From the NCBI RefSeq assembly GCF_002571385.2, contig NW_019217837.1:833714-897713 (forward strand): 64,000 nucleotides of DNA, given 5' to 3'. Source of the stretch: Stylophora pistillata. Taxonomy: Eukaryota. Within the stretch, counting starts at the first letter, position 1; each line of letters begins with the position of its first letter. Positions 11,101-28,403 of the stretch are shown here, piece after piece. Under the pieces are notes generated by a model. The model saw nothing but the letters and a program-made list of their open reading frames with translations, had not been told where the DNA came from and did no database searches. The position numbers and the translations under genes were made by a program.

Positions 11101-14100
11101 TTGAACGGTTATACATTGTGAAAGAAGACGTTTTGTAAGCAGTATACATTGTCCGACTATTTTTTTTTTTTTTTGTCTTCAGGTGACCAACCAAATTGCC
11201 TTAGGACTTGTTACGTATATTGGCATCAGCATATCCCTGATTTCACTAGTGCTGGCTTTTGTAACGTTTTGCTCGTTTGGGTAAGAACTTCCCGCACAAG
11301 AAAAGTTGATTACTTTTGTTTGCTTTTTTGATTACTTTTTTGTAATCAATGTAATGTTACTTTTTTGTTTGCACGTAGTGCCCGGTGTTGTGGTCTATCT
11401 TTGTGTAGTGTCTAATCTAGGGTGAATTGGGGAGGGAAGGTGAGATCAATACATGGACTGAAGTGGCTGCATAGTGCGCCTGATGAATTCTGACGTCCGA
11501 TCTCACCTTAACTGATTGTAAAGCGCGACTGATTATCTATATAGTAGTTTGCGCTATATAAATGTTAAATTGTTGTTGTTGTTTGTTTGAGAGGTGTTGG
11601 GTACATACTTATGGAAATCTCCCTCTCAGTTTCTCCACCTTAACATGAGAAAGTATGACATTGATCTTGTATAGTTGTGACTTGTAGTTTTTTCAGATGC
11701 CGAACAATAATCATGAGAACCTTCAGTAACCTACTATTTCCCACTGCTTTTTCTTAAGGTTTTTGAAATCGAATCGTAATTTTGCTCACATCAACCTGGT
11801 GCTATCGCTTTTTTTGGCCGAACTGCTGTTTGTTGTTGGTATGGAAAAGACACAGTACAAGGTACTTGATTATACTGTACAACAGTCTGGTTTCTCTCTC
11901 AACTCTTTGTACCAGAATCCAAATAATCACATGTCTAACAGAGGTTACAAACGTTCGTGTTCATGATACGACATATAGCTCATCAAATGAGCCATATCAT
12001 CGTTTGAACTTACTGAATGTCCTTCGTTCTAGTTAGCGTGTCATAACGGGATCTCTTCAGCCGGAAGTTAAAAGATACAATAGTTATCGCCGTATAAAAA
12101 TTTGTGGACAGTTTTTTTCGCACAAATCGCTCTGAGCCGGTGGAGGTTATGATTGCAAACTGATCGCTTATCTTTACTGCTGTGTTTGTTTCTAGACTGG
12201 CTGCTTTGTAATTGCCATGTTGCTACATTATCTATTTCTTGTCGCATTTTGCTGGATGGCAACAGAGGGAGTGATTCTTTATATCATGCTAGTTAAAGTT
12301 TTCCCAACATCAAGTTCGGGTCCAAGGAAAAGGATATTTTTCCTTTGCTCATGGGGTGAGCCAATTCTTTGTTAAATGTATGAATGTCGATGTAACAGTG
12401 CCAAACTTATAGCGGAGCTGATCCTTAAATCTTAATACACAATGATATGTTCAACCTAAAGCAGAAACTTAAGGACGTTAAAATGATGAAAAGGTGAGCT
12501 GAGAGATTTAATGAAAAAAAAATCGACAGAACTGAACTAAGCTGGGCTATTTTCATATCCTTCATTATGATTTGTGCGAATATCAGGTGTAAGACTTGGT
12601 TTGTAAAACTGTTGGATTAATAATTCAGCTGTGGAATATATGTTTGATTTTCAAGGTGTGTTCGATTCCAACAAATTCTTTTAATTCTAAAGGAATACCT
12701 CTCATACCTGTGGTTACAGCGTTCCTTATAGATAAAGAGGGCTACACTTCAGACAAACAGTAAGAGTTTTAATGTTTACAGACAATTACATTAATTAATG
12801 TAATGTCTGTAACTGGGTACACGCGCCATCAGAAAAGCCGGAGTGATCGCATCTCCGGAGTGATCGCATCTCGGGACAGCGGACGCGCGCTTCAAAATAC
12901 AAAACAAATTTCAAAATGGCGGCTTCTGAAGCATTTGAGGATGTTGTTGAAGAAGTCATTCGTAGTGACACTGAAGAGCTACAAGACTCCATTGATGAGG
13001 AAAGCGACCAAAAAACTGTAGCTATAGAGTCGGCTGTCAACTGTTTTACAGAATGCAGTGACCTGGGGGAAAATATCGCACTTTTTAAACAAGAGGCAAA
13101 AAGATATCTAAAAGGGCTTTAAGAACAACATGCTCGAGGGAACGATTCATTTGCCATTTTGTGTGAATCATCACTCAACACAGGGGTAGTGTTAAAAGAC
13201 GAAGCCTGTACATGGTTGGATTTAATCTACAGGAGGCTGTCAGCTCGTCAGCGAATTAGGAGACCGTGGTATTTGGAGTTTACCCGTGACATTCCAAAGG
13301 AAATTTTTTTAGCTCTTAAAAGGGCCTTTTCAACCAAAACAAATCATGAGCTAAGGAGCGATGTAGACATCGAAGGAAATCGTAAGGGCCTCTCAAACAG
13401 AATTGCATATTTGCCTTCTGTTTTTTACATGTTTCGAATTTTGACAGGAAAATCAATAGGACAGTTCAAAAGTTATTTGAGAAGGAAGACACCTGGGAAG
13501 GGCAAAGCAAAAGTCCTTATTAGGAGGTTTAAGGAATTCAAACTTTACTACAAGTATTCAAAGCGGCAAATGACTGTTTCGTGTCATTATGGTTTCTGGA
13601 ACATACATGGGTTTCCTTTACACGACTAAGTTTATTATGTTCAATTTGTAGTCTGTTAAAAATGCTTTTAATATGTTTCTTGCATTGTTGATTGTTTACA
13701 AGATAGGAAATAAATATGGGTTTTTAAAACCTCTGAACATTTCTTCTTGACAAATGAAAATTGAAAATTTTAATACTTTACTACAATGCATGTAAGGTAT
13801 GCATAAATACTTCAGTCTGGTCTATGTACTAAAAGCTTGTTGTAAATACATGTTATTCAATGGAATGATAATAAATTATTCATATACATTAACAGTACTT
13901 AATGCATGGTCAATAACTACAAATACAGCAAGTAACATACACAAGTATAAATACAGGCATCAAAATGCAAAATTCAAAAAAACTGGTATTTGATACCTTA
14001 TTTAAACAAGTTATGCAAGTAATAGTTCATGCCAAATTTTTAACATTGATTTGCATGTAACTACTTAAAGATCTAACTGCACATCAAAGACAATTGTTGC

Positions 14101-17100
14101 ATAAAATGTACATAAACCTCTGAAAGACACTTTGATTGTCCAACATGCAAAGCTTTTCACATTTTAAAGGACAGTGATTTCACTGAGTTAAAAATTGCTT
14201 TAGTAGAGCTTCTTATTAACAGCCAGCTTTCCTGATTGACAAGACAGCAAAATAGCCTGCCTATGTAGATGTGAACAATACCCACACCTTTCTGACACCT
14301 CTGGCTTTGGGCAACCACAAAAACAAGTTGTTCAGGGCAACTCTGTTAGGGACATACCTGTCCTTTGAAGGAATGTAATTGTCAAGGTTATATCCCTTTC
14401 CCTTAACCAGATTAAAGAAAGAAATTCGTGGCCAAAAATTTGCTGCCATCTCATGCCATAGTTGGTGTTTTGGGAGTACCTTGAAATAGCAATGTGTTTA
14501 GCTTCCCTCCTTTCCATTGAGGTAACTGAAAGACCCTTTCCATACTTGCACTTAACATCTTTGGTATGCACAGGGACAATGTAACCTATTGTCCATACAG
14601 TAGGTGTTACTATCCCAATAAAAAAACTATAAGCCCTGAAATAGTTGGTGCAGTAAGAAGACAGCACTTTAATTTCATCATCACTGATAGTCATTCTGCA
14701 GAATAAAGACACTGCATTTCTTAGTTGCAAGCTCACAAATGCAAAAGTGTGCAGTCTGAAGGTTTGCCTTGCAGTGTCTGCAGGGGACTCCAAAGACACA
14801 ACTAGATGCATAAAATTATGTAAATACATCCTGGAATCTCTGCCTGTAAATCTATACTCAAAGTCTTTCCCATCTGCCTTTGTTTCATTAAACCACCTTG
14901 TTACTTTGTTTGCTAAGCGGGACAGCTGGCATTTAGATTTCAGTGCCTGTACAAACTTGGAAAATGGAGAATCCCAAGGTACCCCACTCATATTTGTTAC
15001 ATTACCTCCAAGGGCAGACTTTTGGATAGCTTCATGCAACATTATTTTGTGGATATGCTGACAGGCATTATTCTTTAGATGCAAAGGATCTAAATGTGCT
15101 CTGTCAATGAATTTACCAATGAGTGGCTCAAACTCCTGCCTACTCTTACTAGAAGCAATGAATGCTGTTATTTTGCACGNNNNNNNNNNNNNNNNNNNNN
15201 NNGCTTTAGTGTTGGGAGCTAACTGAGTCTTGTTTAATTTATCCTTGAGGTCACCAACTTTCTTAGCAACAGATAATCTCTTATGATATTCCCATGGTCT
15301 GAAATCATTATGGGGTTCTGGGCCAAATGATTTGTTTACATCAAGCAGTTCATCAGTTGAAATGTCAGCAAATGTTGAAAAATACTTGGCACTGTTTGGA
15401 AGCTGCCGAGCCAGAAATGCCAACATTTTCATGTCATTGGGGAATTCTGAAAACTTAAATTTAATGATGGTTGTAAGGTAGAAAGCTGCTAATCTAACAA
15501 GACATTCTGTTAAATTTCTGTAACAGCCATCAACCTGATCCTCAGGTTCCAAATCAGAACAGAAGCTCTCTCTTACACTCTTTAAGGTTCCTATGTCAAC
15601 TTCTTTGAGAAACTTGATAAGTTTGTTATAGGGAACTAACCAAGGCAAGGAACATGACATTACTTGAATGTGTGTTGTTTTAGTTTTCCTCTTAGGATTG
15701 GTAGTCATTAAAAGAGATCTGTACACAGATCTGTACTTTTTCTTACCCATTACCCCTTTTGAATAGAAAACTGAAACACTTCTAAGCATGTTTATGTCTG
15801 AAGTTTCAAATTTTTCTGCTGCATTCTTATAAAGTTTAGGAAAAACCTTTTTGGAAAACTTCTTACTTTTTGACATAAAGTCAACTAGTATCTTTGTAGG
15901 GCACCTTTACTCAGCTGTACTAAGAATACCTATGTGTGCTGGAGTATTATCATTTAGGTCAGCCCCATGTATTTCTTTGGCTGCTTGGTATGTCTCTGAC
16001 CTTCTTTGTGTCTCCACTGTTGAAGATGGCCTCTTCTTATCATCAGAAGGGAGGACATTCGGGTTTTTGCGTCTTGCCTTAATAGACTGCCTGGTTAGAA
16101 AGGCCTTCTCTTTTTGAGGGATAGCTGTGCCAGCTTCAGGCAAGTGTTCTCCCAATTCTTGTATGTCCTCAGACACTTCATCTACCTTTAAAGAGGTGGA
16201 AAATGTGGAATGATTCAATTCCGGTACATGCTTGTATATGCTGTGGTTCAAATTGATCATAACCTCAATAATTTCACTTTGATTTTAACTCATTGCTACA
16301 TACAAGAACATTAAGAAAAATATTTATTGAGTCAAGGATAAAATGAAACAAAACATACATGTCATTTAGCTCGTTAATGTAAGTTGATTATCCATGTATA
16401 TAGTCATAAAGTTAAGTCAAACCAGTAGACTCTGCAATTGCACTACCTATATGAAAATGCAGATAAGTTGACAGCAAATATAAACGAATTTGACAACTTT
16501 TCCTTAGTGTCCTTGCCAGTATAGTCTAACTTTTTATTTTTGTTGTTTTTTCTTTATCATGAGTGGGAATGTTAATAGACACAAATCCATAAGGCTTCTA
16601 TGTAAAATATTTTGATTACAAAAGCACAGATCTGGGTGCCAGCCTGCTTATAATATGTTGATTTATTTTCTCTCTAAAATGTATGTGAGTGAGGAGTTAA
16701 ACTTTTTTTCGTGGGGGGGGGGGTATGAATACTTACTTTCCGAATAAGGTTTGATCATTCAGCCTTTTGCTTGACTAGAATTTTGAGAGTCTTGGCAGCT
16801 TCATCTCTTAAACGCCTTTTCTCTTTCAGAAAAACTCCAACATTAAACCGGCTGTAAACTTTAGCCTTCCTTCGAGCCATAAGGTTAATGTTTATGACGT
16901 CTTCACTGTGTCCTGTTTTTTAACTCCCATCATACTTTAACTGAGGTTTAGCTGTAGTTCAGTTTAGATTCCTCAATACTCGAAATAACAGCTTTTGCTT
17001 TGCCACTTCCTGGTATCTCCCTGTTCACAGGCTTCTTCTCTTAACACTGCTCCTGTGTTGAGTGATGATTCACAAAAAATGGAAAATGAAACGTTCCCTC

Positions 17101-20100
17101 GAGTTTGTTGTTCGTAAAGCCCTTCGACTATATCTTTTTGCCTCTTGTTTAAAAAGTGCGACATGTGCTCACACATCGCTGCACCAAATAGACCAAATGG
17201 CTCGCTCTTCCTGGCCGTCGCACGGTTATTCGGTTGTGAGAATCGAAAATTTAAAAACATAGGTTTCTTCTTCCATTGCTTTTCCTCGGTTCTTGGTGGA
17301 AAACTGTACTCTTGCTGTAGACAGACGAAATATATATGAAGCCAAATATTAGCAACTGTTAGTTAGCGATACGCTTAAGCACAAACAAGAACTCGAGTGG
17401 GGACATACCTGCAATACCTGCAGAGACCGTCGCGAGAAGGTCGGCCATGTTTGGTATCAAAGTGAAGCTCTCACTTCGTAGAATGTAATATTGGCGTCAA
17501 ATCGACGATCAATCGAACTACATTGTCGTTAGGCTTCGTAAAAAACGGCCGATCTCGACGACGCACGGAAAATATTATTAGATCCCAGTCTCCCAACTTC
17601 ACGGCCCAAAAATGTTGCTCACAGCGAACCCGGCAGTTTTTATGGCGCGCGTGCCCAGCGTGATATATATATATATATATATGATATATATTTTTCTTAC
17701 TTCTGATTTCCTCATTCTGGACGAAATTTAATTCTTTGGTCTAGTCACCTAGTGTTTGACCCCGATTTTTTGCAGACTGAAGTCGTCCCTTTTTCGCTTA
17801 GTTATAGAAAGCCCGACTGAACGACTGCACACGAGTCTTTTGAGATTTTCATGTAACTGACGAATCACCTCTCTGCTGGAAGTTACTTATTCAATTGACA
17901 ATTGTTCATCCTTCATTAATTAATTAATTCACTCACCATTCACTTATCAGAAACCAACTTTTATTCTAAAAAGTAGGTAAAGAATATATTACATAACTTA
18001 TTTAATGCAACTTTGTAATCACCAACTTCACTCGTAAATATTTAAACAAACTGAACTAAGTTGTTAATCAACAATCAAACGATTAAACATTGAAGAAGGA
18101 AAGGTGTTAGTTGTTCCTTAAATTTTGCCTCTCCCCTTTGACCTCGCGATTGAATTTTCATGCGATTTCTCTTTGTGATAGCTGCTGGTTGTCTGTTGAA
18201 GACGGTTTCGTATGGAGTTTTGTCGGCCCTGTTCTTCTCATATGTGTGGTAAGACTGATACCTGCATTTAGCTTCCACTTCTTTTTTGTCAGCTGCCGCT
18301 GTGTTGCACATGTTGGAAAATGTACAATGCTGATTGTAATTTTTACGTTTTAGCTGAATCTGGTGTTTTTAGGAATGACACTCAAGGTTATGGCAACGCG
18401 TTCCCTGAATCAGCCTGCCCGTAACCCGCCAAAAATGAGGTAAGGAATAAAACAACAGTACTGCAAGCTAAGATGTTAAAAGCATTAAGATGATGATTAC
18501 CATAATGGAAGAGTAGAAGAAGTCACTTGGTAAATTAATCACTGTGAGGAAAATTTTACTCAGGAAGATTCTGGTGCGTAAGCTGAGCAAAAACAATCTG
18601 AACATAAATTAGTAGGTAATAGGTTATAAGTTCCAAGCATAAGTAACTGGTTGGATTCGTAATGCTATAATGAATTCGGTCATAGGTTTTTTCATTTAAT
18701 ACCCTTTGCGATGCTGTAACCCGGTTGACATTTTTTCACGTATTATTTATTTTTTCATGTATTTGTTTATCTATTCATAAAATATTTTGCTCGTTGACTA
18801 ACTCTCAACTCCTTTCCTCAGGTACTGGGTAAAAGCCTGCGCAGTATTGACGTGTCTTTTAGGCACAACATGGCTACTGGGATTGTTTTTCCTGGACAAA
18901 GCTACAGTCCTCTTTGCTTATCTGTTCAATATTTTCAACACTTTGCAGGTGAATCCGATAGTTGATTCCTTCCCTAGCCTCCTGAATTTTATGATTACTT
19001 AATTCTTTTGGGTAGGAATTAGTAGGAAATAGCTGTCTCACAGAGATGAGAACGCTCGTCTCCCACCGTTTGTGCCCAACTTCTCTTCACGAACCTGCTA
19101 GCGACAGAGATTGGTTCAGTTTGTTGTTGCTTCTCGTCCTCTCACCAAGAGGTTTTTCCACGTTCTCTAGATTCCGTCCCTCCTATTAAGACAACAACCC
19201 TTATCCCAATATCAATTAAGAATAGAGAACAAAAAGCCATCTTGGTTAATTCTACATCCGATTCAATTAATTTAAGAAGTTTTGTCTTCCAAGCAAGAAG
19301 ACCTCTGTTTCCGAATTACTTATGTTCCTTGTTTTTCTTTAATTTTTCAAGGGACTTTTCATCTTTATTTTTCATTGCTTAGCTGATGACAGGGTAAGCA
19401 AGTCTTTCGATTTTAATCGTTTGTCTTTTAGTCATATAATTAAAATTGAAATCTAACAGAGTCACGGTAATCGAAACAAGACTATAACGGGGCATTTTTG
19501 ATTAATTGATTTTAGATTAATGGTGAATACATTGTATTATGGGTAAAATATAAAAGATTAATCACAAGCTTCCGACTTAATAATCCTTAATGATTTTTAG
19601 ATTCGCTCTGAGTACAAACGGATACTTTGCTGTCATGGAAGTCGAAGAGACTACCTCCGTGACAATATAATTGCAAAATCACAGCAGAAATATTCGTCTA
19701 GTCAGGTGAGTAAAATTAGTTAGTTAAGACACTCAGAGAAAAAATGAACAAACAAGTTCATGGTTGTATGGTAGATTACCATACAACCATGGCGGATCCA
19801 CGTAAAAAACCCAGCTATTAATTCCTGGTCTGAATCCTCTCTTGTGTTTTGCATTGTACAGACGACAAGACTTCAAAGGAAAGCCATGTTATCGGAAGGT
19901 GGGTTAAATGGTATATTTCAATGAACGTAGTCAAAGAGAATTTAAAACATATTTTCCATATTTTTTTCACTAACAATCATTTTCAATCCTTTGTTCTCAA
20001 GGCTGACTTCTAGAAAGAAAGCCATGAACATGTTTTATGTCGCCTGCAAAACAGGCAAAAAGGCGCTGGTTCTTGCTACCCTAGGCATGGCCAGGATCTC

Positions 20101-28015: not shown

Positions 28016-28403
28016 TTTATAACATAACCAAAGTAAAGCGCGCGCTCTGATCGGTCAATTTAGCGCCCCCCATTTGCCCATGGGTGTATGCTGGTGACGT
28101 GAGCAAATGCAAAGACTATTTTTCCGCGCGCGCTTGTTTTTTTCTGGTCGCGTAAGATTTGTTAAATAAAAGGGAACTCTTTAGCTACAATGTATTAATG
28201 TTATGTTATAAAACAAATGGTAAACACCACAGCGTACACTATTGAGTTATGGATGCACGCGGGAGGTTGCTAAGCACGAAAGAAGCGTAAGAGTCGCTCT
28301 CGGCTATCGCCTCGAGCGACTCTTACGCTTCTTTCGTGCTTAGCAACCTCCCAAGTGCATCCATAACTCAATAGTGTACGCTGTGGTGTTTACCATTTGT
28401 TAA
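28016..28403. mobile_element. Non-autonomous bipartite hairpin element (inverted-repeat unit plus ~190 bp near-perfect palindrome)
   Basis: TTTATAACATAAC...GTTATGTTATAAA (28016-28212) followed by AACAAATGGTAAACACCACAGCG...CGCTGTGGTGTTTACCATTTGTT (28212-28401). A second copy of the palindrome arm starts at 44134. Confidence 0.88.

Follow-up and report, generated by a model that had tools for sequence, protein, structure and literature searches.

The bases at positions 17629-17662 of the window (the whole 64,000-nucleotide stretch of Stylophora pistillata DNA analysed here, from contig NW_019217837.1) very probably form the transposase-proximal terminal inverted repeat (TIR) of a dead element of the CMCT clade of transposons, with CAC...GTG termini, 3-bp target duplications, a DDE transposase of predicted RAG1/Transib fold and a convergent partner gene. 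The element occupies 12813-17662 (~4.85 kb) and is a dead copy of a two-gene cut-and-paste DNA transposon, because its left tip is truncated and both its transposase and its partner gene are broken. A preliminary description of this DNA had drawn attention to 17635-17662 as an element end that resembles the 12-type recombination signal sequence (12-RSS) of V(D)J recombination, lies next to a RAG1-like open reading frame (ORF), and so bears on RSS origin. That suggestion holds in part: the CAC border, the register of the A-tract inside it and the RAG1-like fold of the predicted transposase speak for it, whereas the symmetry of the two ends, the 3-bp target duplication and the constraint on the supposed spacer speak against it.

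The resemblance itself is correctly described. On the plus strand 17635-17662 reads agtttttatggcgcgcgtgcccagcgtg and runs into an (AT)n microsatellite (17663-17690), which directly adjoins the transposase-side tip; on the minus strand, as the reverse complement running inward from 17662, it gives CACGCTG, the 12-nt GGCACGCGCGCC and then ATAAAAACT. The first block agrees with the RSS heptamer CACAGTG at 5/7 positions and the last with the nonamer ACAAAAACC at 7/9, at exactly the 12-nt spacing. The preliminary description cautioned that a single copy could match by chance, and rightly: when CAC, at least 5/7 of the heptamer, at least 7/9 of the nonamer and a 12-nt spacer are required, the window contains three matches; 60 random windows generated by a first-order Markov model contained 1.1 on average and 4 at most, and the lone match at 17635-17662 is therefore not significant. 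Another RSS-like match, likewise at chance level, lies within the element (16882-16910, minus strand: CACAGTG, 12 nt, ACATTAACC). What raises the flagged match above chance is its location exactly at a transposon boundary together with its retention in related copies.

The boundary is defined by comparison of copies. The host genome holds only four such termini, one pair of which flanks an 868-bp, non-coding derivative with an internal deletion (L002); intact relatives were taken from public assemblies, and their TIRs, of 31-34 bp (e.g. the arms of L013, which pair over 34 nt at 91% complementarity), enclose two convergent genes, that of the transposase and one annotated as PF26709/DUF8238. 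Similarity between copies terminates exactly at CAC, as do the target duplications, so the flagged stretch is indeed an element end, with the complete transposase-side TIR (~31-34 bp) at 17629-17662 on the minus strand. A perfect 3-bp target duplication flanks 10/11 complete elements (AAA three times, GCA, GTC, CTC, AGT, ACG, AAT and CAA), with the fourth base matching in none; the exception is L013 (GCA vs CAT). The original duplication of the window copy is unreadable, because its opposite tip is truncated.

One element, with identical TIRs and the same 682-aa transposase, is present at two loci in two assemblies (L177 and L178), where it is flanked by different 3-bp duplications, CAA and ACG, which suggests recent mobility of that lineage. 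The family is abundant in cnidarian-type genomes. A TIR pair was also searched for around two further loci, L020 and L054, and was not found. Another copy (L055:1-14241) sits among genes matching a Pox_A32 packaging ATPase, an rve integrase, HNH, Endonuclease_7 and phospholipase A2, a context that looks Polinton- or virus-like; some larger mobile or viral element may have received the transposon as an insertion, or may carry it along.

Conservation of the TIR was assessed from 18 termini of nine lineages, the transposases of which are 43-91% identical to an intact reference, P0001. CAC ends all 18 termini, not CTGGG, the alternative boundary that the preliminary description had considered. C1, A2, C3 and G8 are each present in 18/18 termini, G4 in 17/18, G7, G9, A11 and C31 in 16/18 each, and C10 in 14/18; further in, A24 is found in 16/18 and A25 in 15/18, where the background frequency of AA is 0.07. 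The alignment of the nine transposase-side ends shows no variation at C1-3, G7-C12 and A24-26. Positions 16-22, by comparison, are essentially free (0.07-0.43 bits). The TIR is thus bipartite, since CACG-yy-GGGCA and AAAA(23-26)..GCC(29-31) are kept and positions 16-22 are unconstrained between them. In the window copy these parts are, all on the minus strand, the tip CACGCTG (17656-17662), the conserved GGCAC (17651-17655) and the A-tract block ATAAAAACT (17635-17643), which GCC follows.

In the 12-spacer register A24/A25 correspond to nonamer positions 5-6, and heptamer positions 1-3 and nonamer positions 5-6 are the universally conserved RSS positions according to Kapitonov and Jurka (PMC1131882). 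The layout of the TIR therefore coincides with that of a 12-RSS at five RSS-critical positions. The A-rich block is in the nonamer register, with the 12-nt spacing retained, in 8/9 lineages, and it is absent in the clade of L055, L027 and L034; a rough binomial estimate for at least 7/9 lineages at the background AA frequency is ~3e-7, before correction for choice of register. As a weak negative control, the 15-nt tip was scanned against metagenomes: the contigs that matched were all unrelated and for the most part GC-rich, and AAA at 24-26 occurred in 0/120 matches.

Past ~31 bp the two ends diverge. On the transposase side a T-run plus GGCCGTGAAG lies at ~+50-66, and on the partner side GTGATCGC lies at ~+35-45; the T-run block is shared by several lineages and is absent from the partner side. 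In the window copy it is located at 17598-17613 (minus strand), ~50-66 nt from the tip, as a T-run followed by GGGCCGTGAAG, and in the alignment T51 is invariant, with the consensus TTTTTTGCCCGTG. These subterminal blocks could be binding sites or promoters. A related proposal, that the A-tract and GCC block within the TIR is itself a promoter element, facing outward or inward, for the genes starting ~100 bp to 1.4 kb inside the ends and has no role in transposase binding, gains something from the proximity of the partner ATG to its terminus (only ~100 bp in the window copy) and from the differences between the subterminal blocks at the two ends, which could be promoters. We consider it improbable: the A-tract block is identical on both ends, inverted and at equal distance from the tip, and therefore fits a TIR binding site, not two different promoters; moreover it is retained in the 868-bp derivative, which is non-coding.

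The transposase family is large (3110 clusters at E<=1e-3 in a 50%-identity library), with 71 matches in the host genome. A stop-free homologue in one locus (L026, G000:C157:489607-491772) lies inside an open frame reported as 2453 aa and may represent either a fusion or a domestication. An AlphaFold (AF2) model of the intact reference P0001 (771 aa), made from a 40-sequence alignment, has pLDDT 86.4 and pTM 0.80. Its top Foldseek matches are RAG1 (E 2e-14), and VIA-align places model residues 150-711 on RAG1 459-1007 with Z values of 22-26 over ~474 aligned residues, compared with 20.7 for BbRAGL of amphioxus, 20.0 for HzTransib, 12.5 for the P element and ~7 for Hermes. Matches to the RAG1/HzTransib core fold align ~420-475 residues, at ~11-13% identity to RAG1 in the structural alignments, and the language-model neighbours of the transposase include RAG1_RNase_H clusters. 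As modelled, the protein matches the RAG1/Transib core fold through the DDBD, pre-RNase H, RNase H, insertion and C-terminal domains. The neighbouring ORF that the preliminary description called RAG1-like is so by predicted fold, then, and has no Pfam or PDB sequence match.

Short motifs are consistent with this assignment. Among the 40 aligned sequences D286, D367, E666 and E669 are invariant (40/40), a (D/E)-P-L-H477 motif is near-invariant at its last two positions (L476 40/40, H477 39/40), and an H-x4-H motif is formed by H643 (27/40) and H648 (40/40); the family also has a C-terminal CxC...CxxC cluster. At the other end of the model residues 1-52 are disordered and residues 53-152 are predicted to be helical, without Cys/His ligands, and the longer homologues give no zinc-finger Pfam match. 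A conserved basic stretch, R-x-RR-x-ET..AA..IHG, directly precedes the part aligned with the RAG1 DDBD, and some whole-model alignments reach, at high rmsd (root-mean-square deviation), into the RAG1 nonamer-binding domain (NBD).

Several observations weigh against so close an association of the family with RAG1 and with the RSS. A sequence-level link of the transposase to RAG1 or Transib is absent. Pfam returns nothing for 53 proteins of the family and no consistent family over all the sets searched, which were the ORFs of the window, intact homologues (three), homologues with an N-terminal extension (ten) and the members of the alignment (40); for those 40 no family appears at E<=10, and a transposase profile search of PDB sequences returns nothing. 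Because the Pfam RAG1 model and the PDB profile search are both blank, the kinship to RAG1 rests on the fold and the short motifs. The RAG1 hidden Markov model PF12940 has no match in the host genome, a negative that shows little, as it has none in 14 control genomes either. Invariance and the predicted order of the strands, rather than a residue-level superposition, underlie the assignment of the catalytic triad. A conserved Cys pair is absent between D367 and H477, where S386 (40/40) and A389 (32/40) occupy what we take to be the places of RAG1 C727 and C730; the C(2)C motif is seemingly replaced, which we treat as a lead only. The N-terminal domain by itself (pLDDT 78.8) gives no significant Foldseek match, and it aligns with the RAG1 NBD (389-457, four entries) with Z of 3.1-3.5, compared with up to 4.1 for unrelated chains. 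Finally, in the distant clade of L055, L027 and L034 the ends read CACGCYGGG followed by a T-run at 12-17, with no A-tract at 23-26.

The partner protein (~237 aa) has an acidic N terminus and an invariant C-terminal motif, YG-x-WN-xx-G-(F/W)-P-x-H. Its gene is always convergent with that of the transposase, and its orthologues carry the precomputed Pfam assignment PF26709. A profile search yields no PDB sequence relative, local Pfam searches no match (kelch and PHD included), and the ESM Atlas no usable match; neither in size nor in annotation does the partner appear RAG2-like. A complex prediction of the transposase (residues 53-771) with the partner scored 0.00, which is no evidence either way.

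These results bear on the most direct reading of the flagged end, in which the transposon would be truly Transib/RAG-like and this end a progenitor of the 12-RSS, with a 23-type end as its partner. The match of the predicted fold to RAG1 is as strong as that to HzTransib, the tip is the exact heptamer CACAGTG in the L022 and L028 lineages, and a convergent gene pair is also a feature of ProtoRAG. A longer-spacer (23-type) partner end of the kind that the preliminary description proposed to look for was sought in 11 complete elements and none was found: both ends share the 12-type geometry in all 11, positions 33-36 carry only 0.1-0.3 bits, and there is no 12/23 asymmetry. With 3-bp in place of 5-bp duplications, two 12-type ends and no information at 33-36, the proposal is already contradicted; the lack of a RAG1 match in Pfam or among PDB sequences, and a partner of ~237 aa without kelch or PHD match or PDB relative, tell against it further, and we regard it as extremely unlikely.

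For a CMCT element with two like ends a mechanism may be envisaged. A transposase dimer would bind the ends in a 12/12-type arrangement, with CAC and the bases following it being read by the catalytic and insertion domains, and with the A-tract, two helical turns further in, being read by the basic N-terminal helical region, which is located where RAG1 has its NBD. Cleavage would occur at the CAC border, in the terminal block CACG-yy-GGGCA, and integration would follow with a 3-bp stagger.

How much the second TIR block says about the RSS is a separate matter. Internal A/T tracts are frequent in transposase binding sites, where they serve DNA bending and minor-groove contacts. It is quite possible, if somewhat short of probable, that the RSS likeness is generic or convergent, combining the CAC...GTG ends found across the CMCT clade with a common internal A/T tract, in which case the 12-RSS register would be uninformative on RSS origin. 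The single match is, as noted, at chance level; CAC/GTG termini are a hallmark of the clade (PMC4079192, PMC12730594); and the A/T tract shifts in some lineages, as in the T-run of the L055, L027 and L034 clade and in L176, which has an additional A5 at 11-15. In addition, the two ends are alike, the start of the 'spacer' (GGCA) is conserved nearly like CAC, and the TIRs of HzTransib, which is closer to RAG, show little nonamer similarity (PMC8289069). Set against this, A24/A25 are kept in 8/9 lineages while their neighbours drift, at the uncorrected binomial level given above, and the protein is predicted to have the full RAG1 core architecture with a basic helical region at the place of the RAG1 NBD. 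Homology of the A-tract block with the RSS nonamer is possible but, on balance, rather unlikely.

The best fit for the family is an undescribed, or at least Pfam-unannotated, lineage within CMCT, which Repbase or Dfam may already name. The CMCT (CACTA/Mirage/Chapaev/Transib) clade comprises EnSpm, Mirage, Chapaev and Transib (plus RAG1), which share CA..TG termini, duplications of 2-5 bp and the motifs C(2)C and H(3-4)H (PMC12730594). The termini and the duplication length of the present family point to the CMC side of this clade, where Chapaev makes duplications of 3-4 bp and EnSpm of 3 bp (PMC4079192, PMC12730594). The family is placed there because its CAC...GTG termini and 3-bp duplications fit, as does its DDE transposase with the LH and H(3-4)H signature, while Chapaev, plant CACTA and canonical Transib each mismatch: the N-terminal Chapa (NZD-like) zinc-finger domain of Chapaev is absent, the Pfam models of plant CACTA transposases give no match, and canonical Transib, ProtoRAG and RAG make 5-bp duplications, not 3-bp. 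Within CMCT a RAG1-like fold is expected and not surprising; the unusual traits are the conserved partner gene and the position of the second TIR block, which lies in an RSS12-like register.

Comparison with the individual systems makes this clearer. With Chapaev, which has been placed inside the Transib superfamily (PMC4411706) and is characterised by 3-4-bp duplications and CAC/GTG ends (PMC4079192), and with Chapaev3, the family shares invariable CAC...GTG termini, 3-4-bp duplications, the LH and H(4)H motifs and an occurrence in sea anemones or other animals (PMC4079192, PMC4411706). It differs from them in its N terminus, which is predicted to be disordered or helical and is Cys-poor, in the C(2)C motif, which is seemingly replaced, and in having both a partner gene and the CxC...CxxC cluster near the C terminus; nor are its duplications the TWA of Chapaev3. 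EnSpm/CACTA elements likewise have CAC... termini, a 3-bp duplication and two genes, for the transposase and a second protein, but the DUF8238 partner is unrelated to anything named, the hosts are animals (cnidarians), and the terminal block is CACG-yy-GGGCA and not CACTA.

Transib elements have a TIR of the form CACAATG-N23-AAAAAAATC and a 5-bp GC-rich duplication (PMC1131882). Like the present family, they have a two-part TIR that opens with CAC and carries an A-rich block further in, their ends are mostly symmetric, and the DDE core is RAG1-like (here by prediction); the family differs in the 12-type distance of its second block (23-type in Transib), in having a second gene, and in lacking a Pfam RAG1 match. 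Some Hopper/Nozomi-related Transibs also make 3-bp duplications (bioRxiv 10.64898/2026.08.26.747230). In ProtoRAG of amphioxus, convergent RAG1L and RAG2L genes lie between the TIRs, the CAC heptamer is essential and a second TIR block is present, and the BbRAGL structure fits the transposase model (Z 20.7); ProtoRAG differs in its 5-bp duplications, its 27/31-bp spacers, its kelch RAG2L partner and its TR5 block, which is not A-rich (PMC8289069).

With the 12-RSS itself the family shares CAC at the cleavage border, an A-tract on nonamer positions 4-7 in the 12-nt register, constraint on the bases following the heptamer (in the RSS, RAG makes contact with spacer positions 1-5; PMC8289069) and an enzyme whose predicted structure fits the RAG1 core from DDBD to the C-terminal domain. 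It differs in that conservation at positions 8-11 approaches that of CAC, that heptamer positions 4-7 are G-y-y-G in most lineages in place of AGTG, and that the system has no 23-type end or evidence of a 12/23 rule, a 3-bp duplication and a partner that does not appear RAG2-like.

The window copy shows how such an element decays. Its partner-side TIR (12813-12842, plus strand) is truncated, beginning CTGGG at 12813 without the CACG of relatives, which there read CACGCTGGGCACAC... (L013, L005 and L002). The preliminary description was accurate on this end: the spacer is common to both ends (GGTACACGCGCC at 12816-12827), CAC is lost, and the A-tract is weakened, to ATCAGAAAA. At 12838-12871 (plus strand) the subterminal GTGATCGC block of the partner side is duplicated in tandem over 17 bp, as two copies of CCGGAGTGATCGCATCT; this duplication is found in the window copy only, the alignment having a single copy in L013, L005, L002 and L014. 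The partner gene (DUF8238 family, PF26709 on orthologues; 237 codons; 12916-13629, plus strand) has one in-frame stop, at 13120-13122. The transposase pseudogene (14332-16260, minus strand) is 91% identical to intact P0001 and is interrupted by an in-frame stop at 15907-15909; relative to L013 it also has an in-frame deletion of ~85 codons near 15468/15469, by which the first catalytic Asp, D286 in P0001, is lost, and it includes masked N at 15181-15203.

The transposase-side subterminal region of this copy further contains an inverted partial duplicate of partner-gene sequence (17027-17183, minus strand), which pairs with 13054-13209 at 85-90% complementarity. The duplicate is also present in L013 and L014 and was not detected in L018, L019, L022 and L055, and from these sequences it appears to be specific to the window lineage; a further inverted pairing involves 13478-13552 and 16953-17027. 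The window copy and the short derivative L002 are old, and polymorphism is unlikely. Elsewhere in the window, 28212-28401 forms an almost perfect palindrome, its arms of 93 nt being 96% complementary around a loop of 4 nt, and is probably a foldback or MITE-like repeat.

How the RSS geometry arose is still argued. The ends of HzTransib resemble the nonamer only a little, and ProtoRAG has a second block that is not rich in A. The present family, which is large and has no Pfam model for its transposase, combines a RAG1-like core, as modelled, with five RSS-critical positions in the 12-type register, yet has symmetric ends and a 3-bp stagger. We consider it unlikely that the 12-type heptamer and A-tract end, together with a RAG1-fold transposase carrying an NBD-like N terminus, is an ancestral CMCT trait kept in this cnidarian family; were it so, the nonamer and its spacing would predate the Transib/RAG lineage, and RAG2, the 5-bp stagger and the 23-type signal would have been added later. 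The existence of natural intact copies makes the proposed reading of the A-tract by the N-terminal region, a possible cleavage through a hairpin and the role of the DUF8238 partner directly testable. If the resemblance to the RSS is convergent, the family would still be a distinct two-gene CMCT lineage, and one that annotates many 'hypothetical proteins' of cnidarians.

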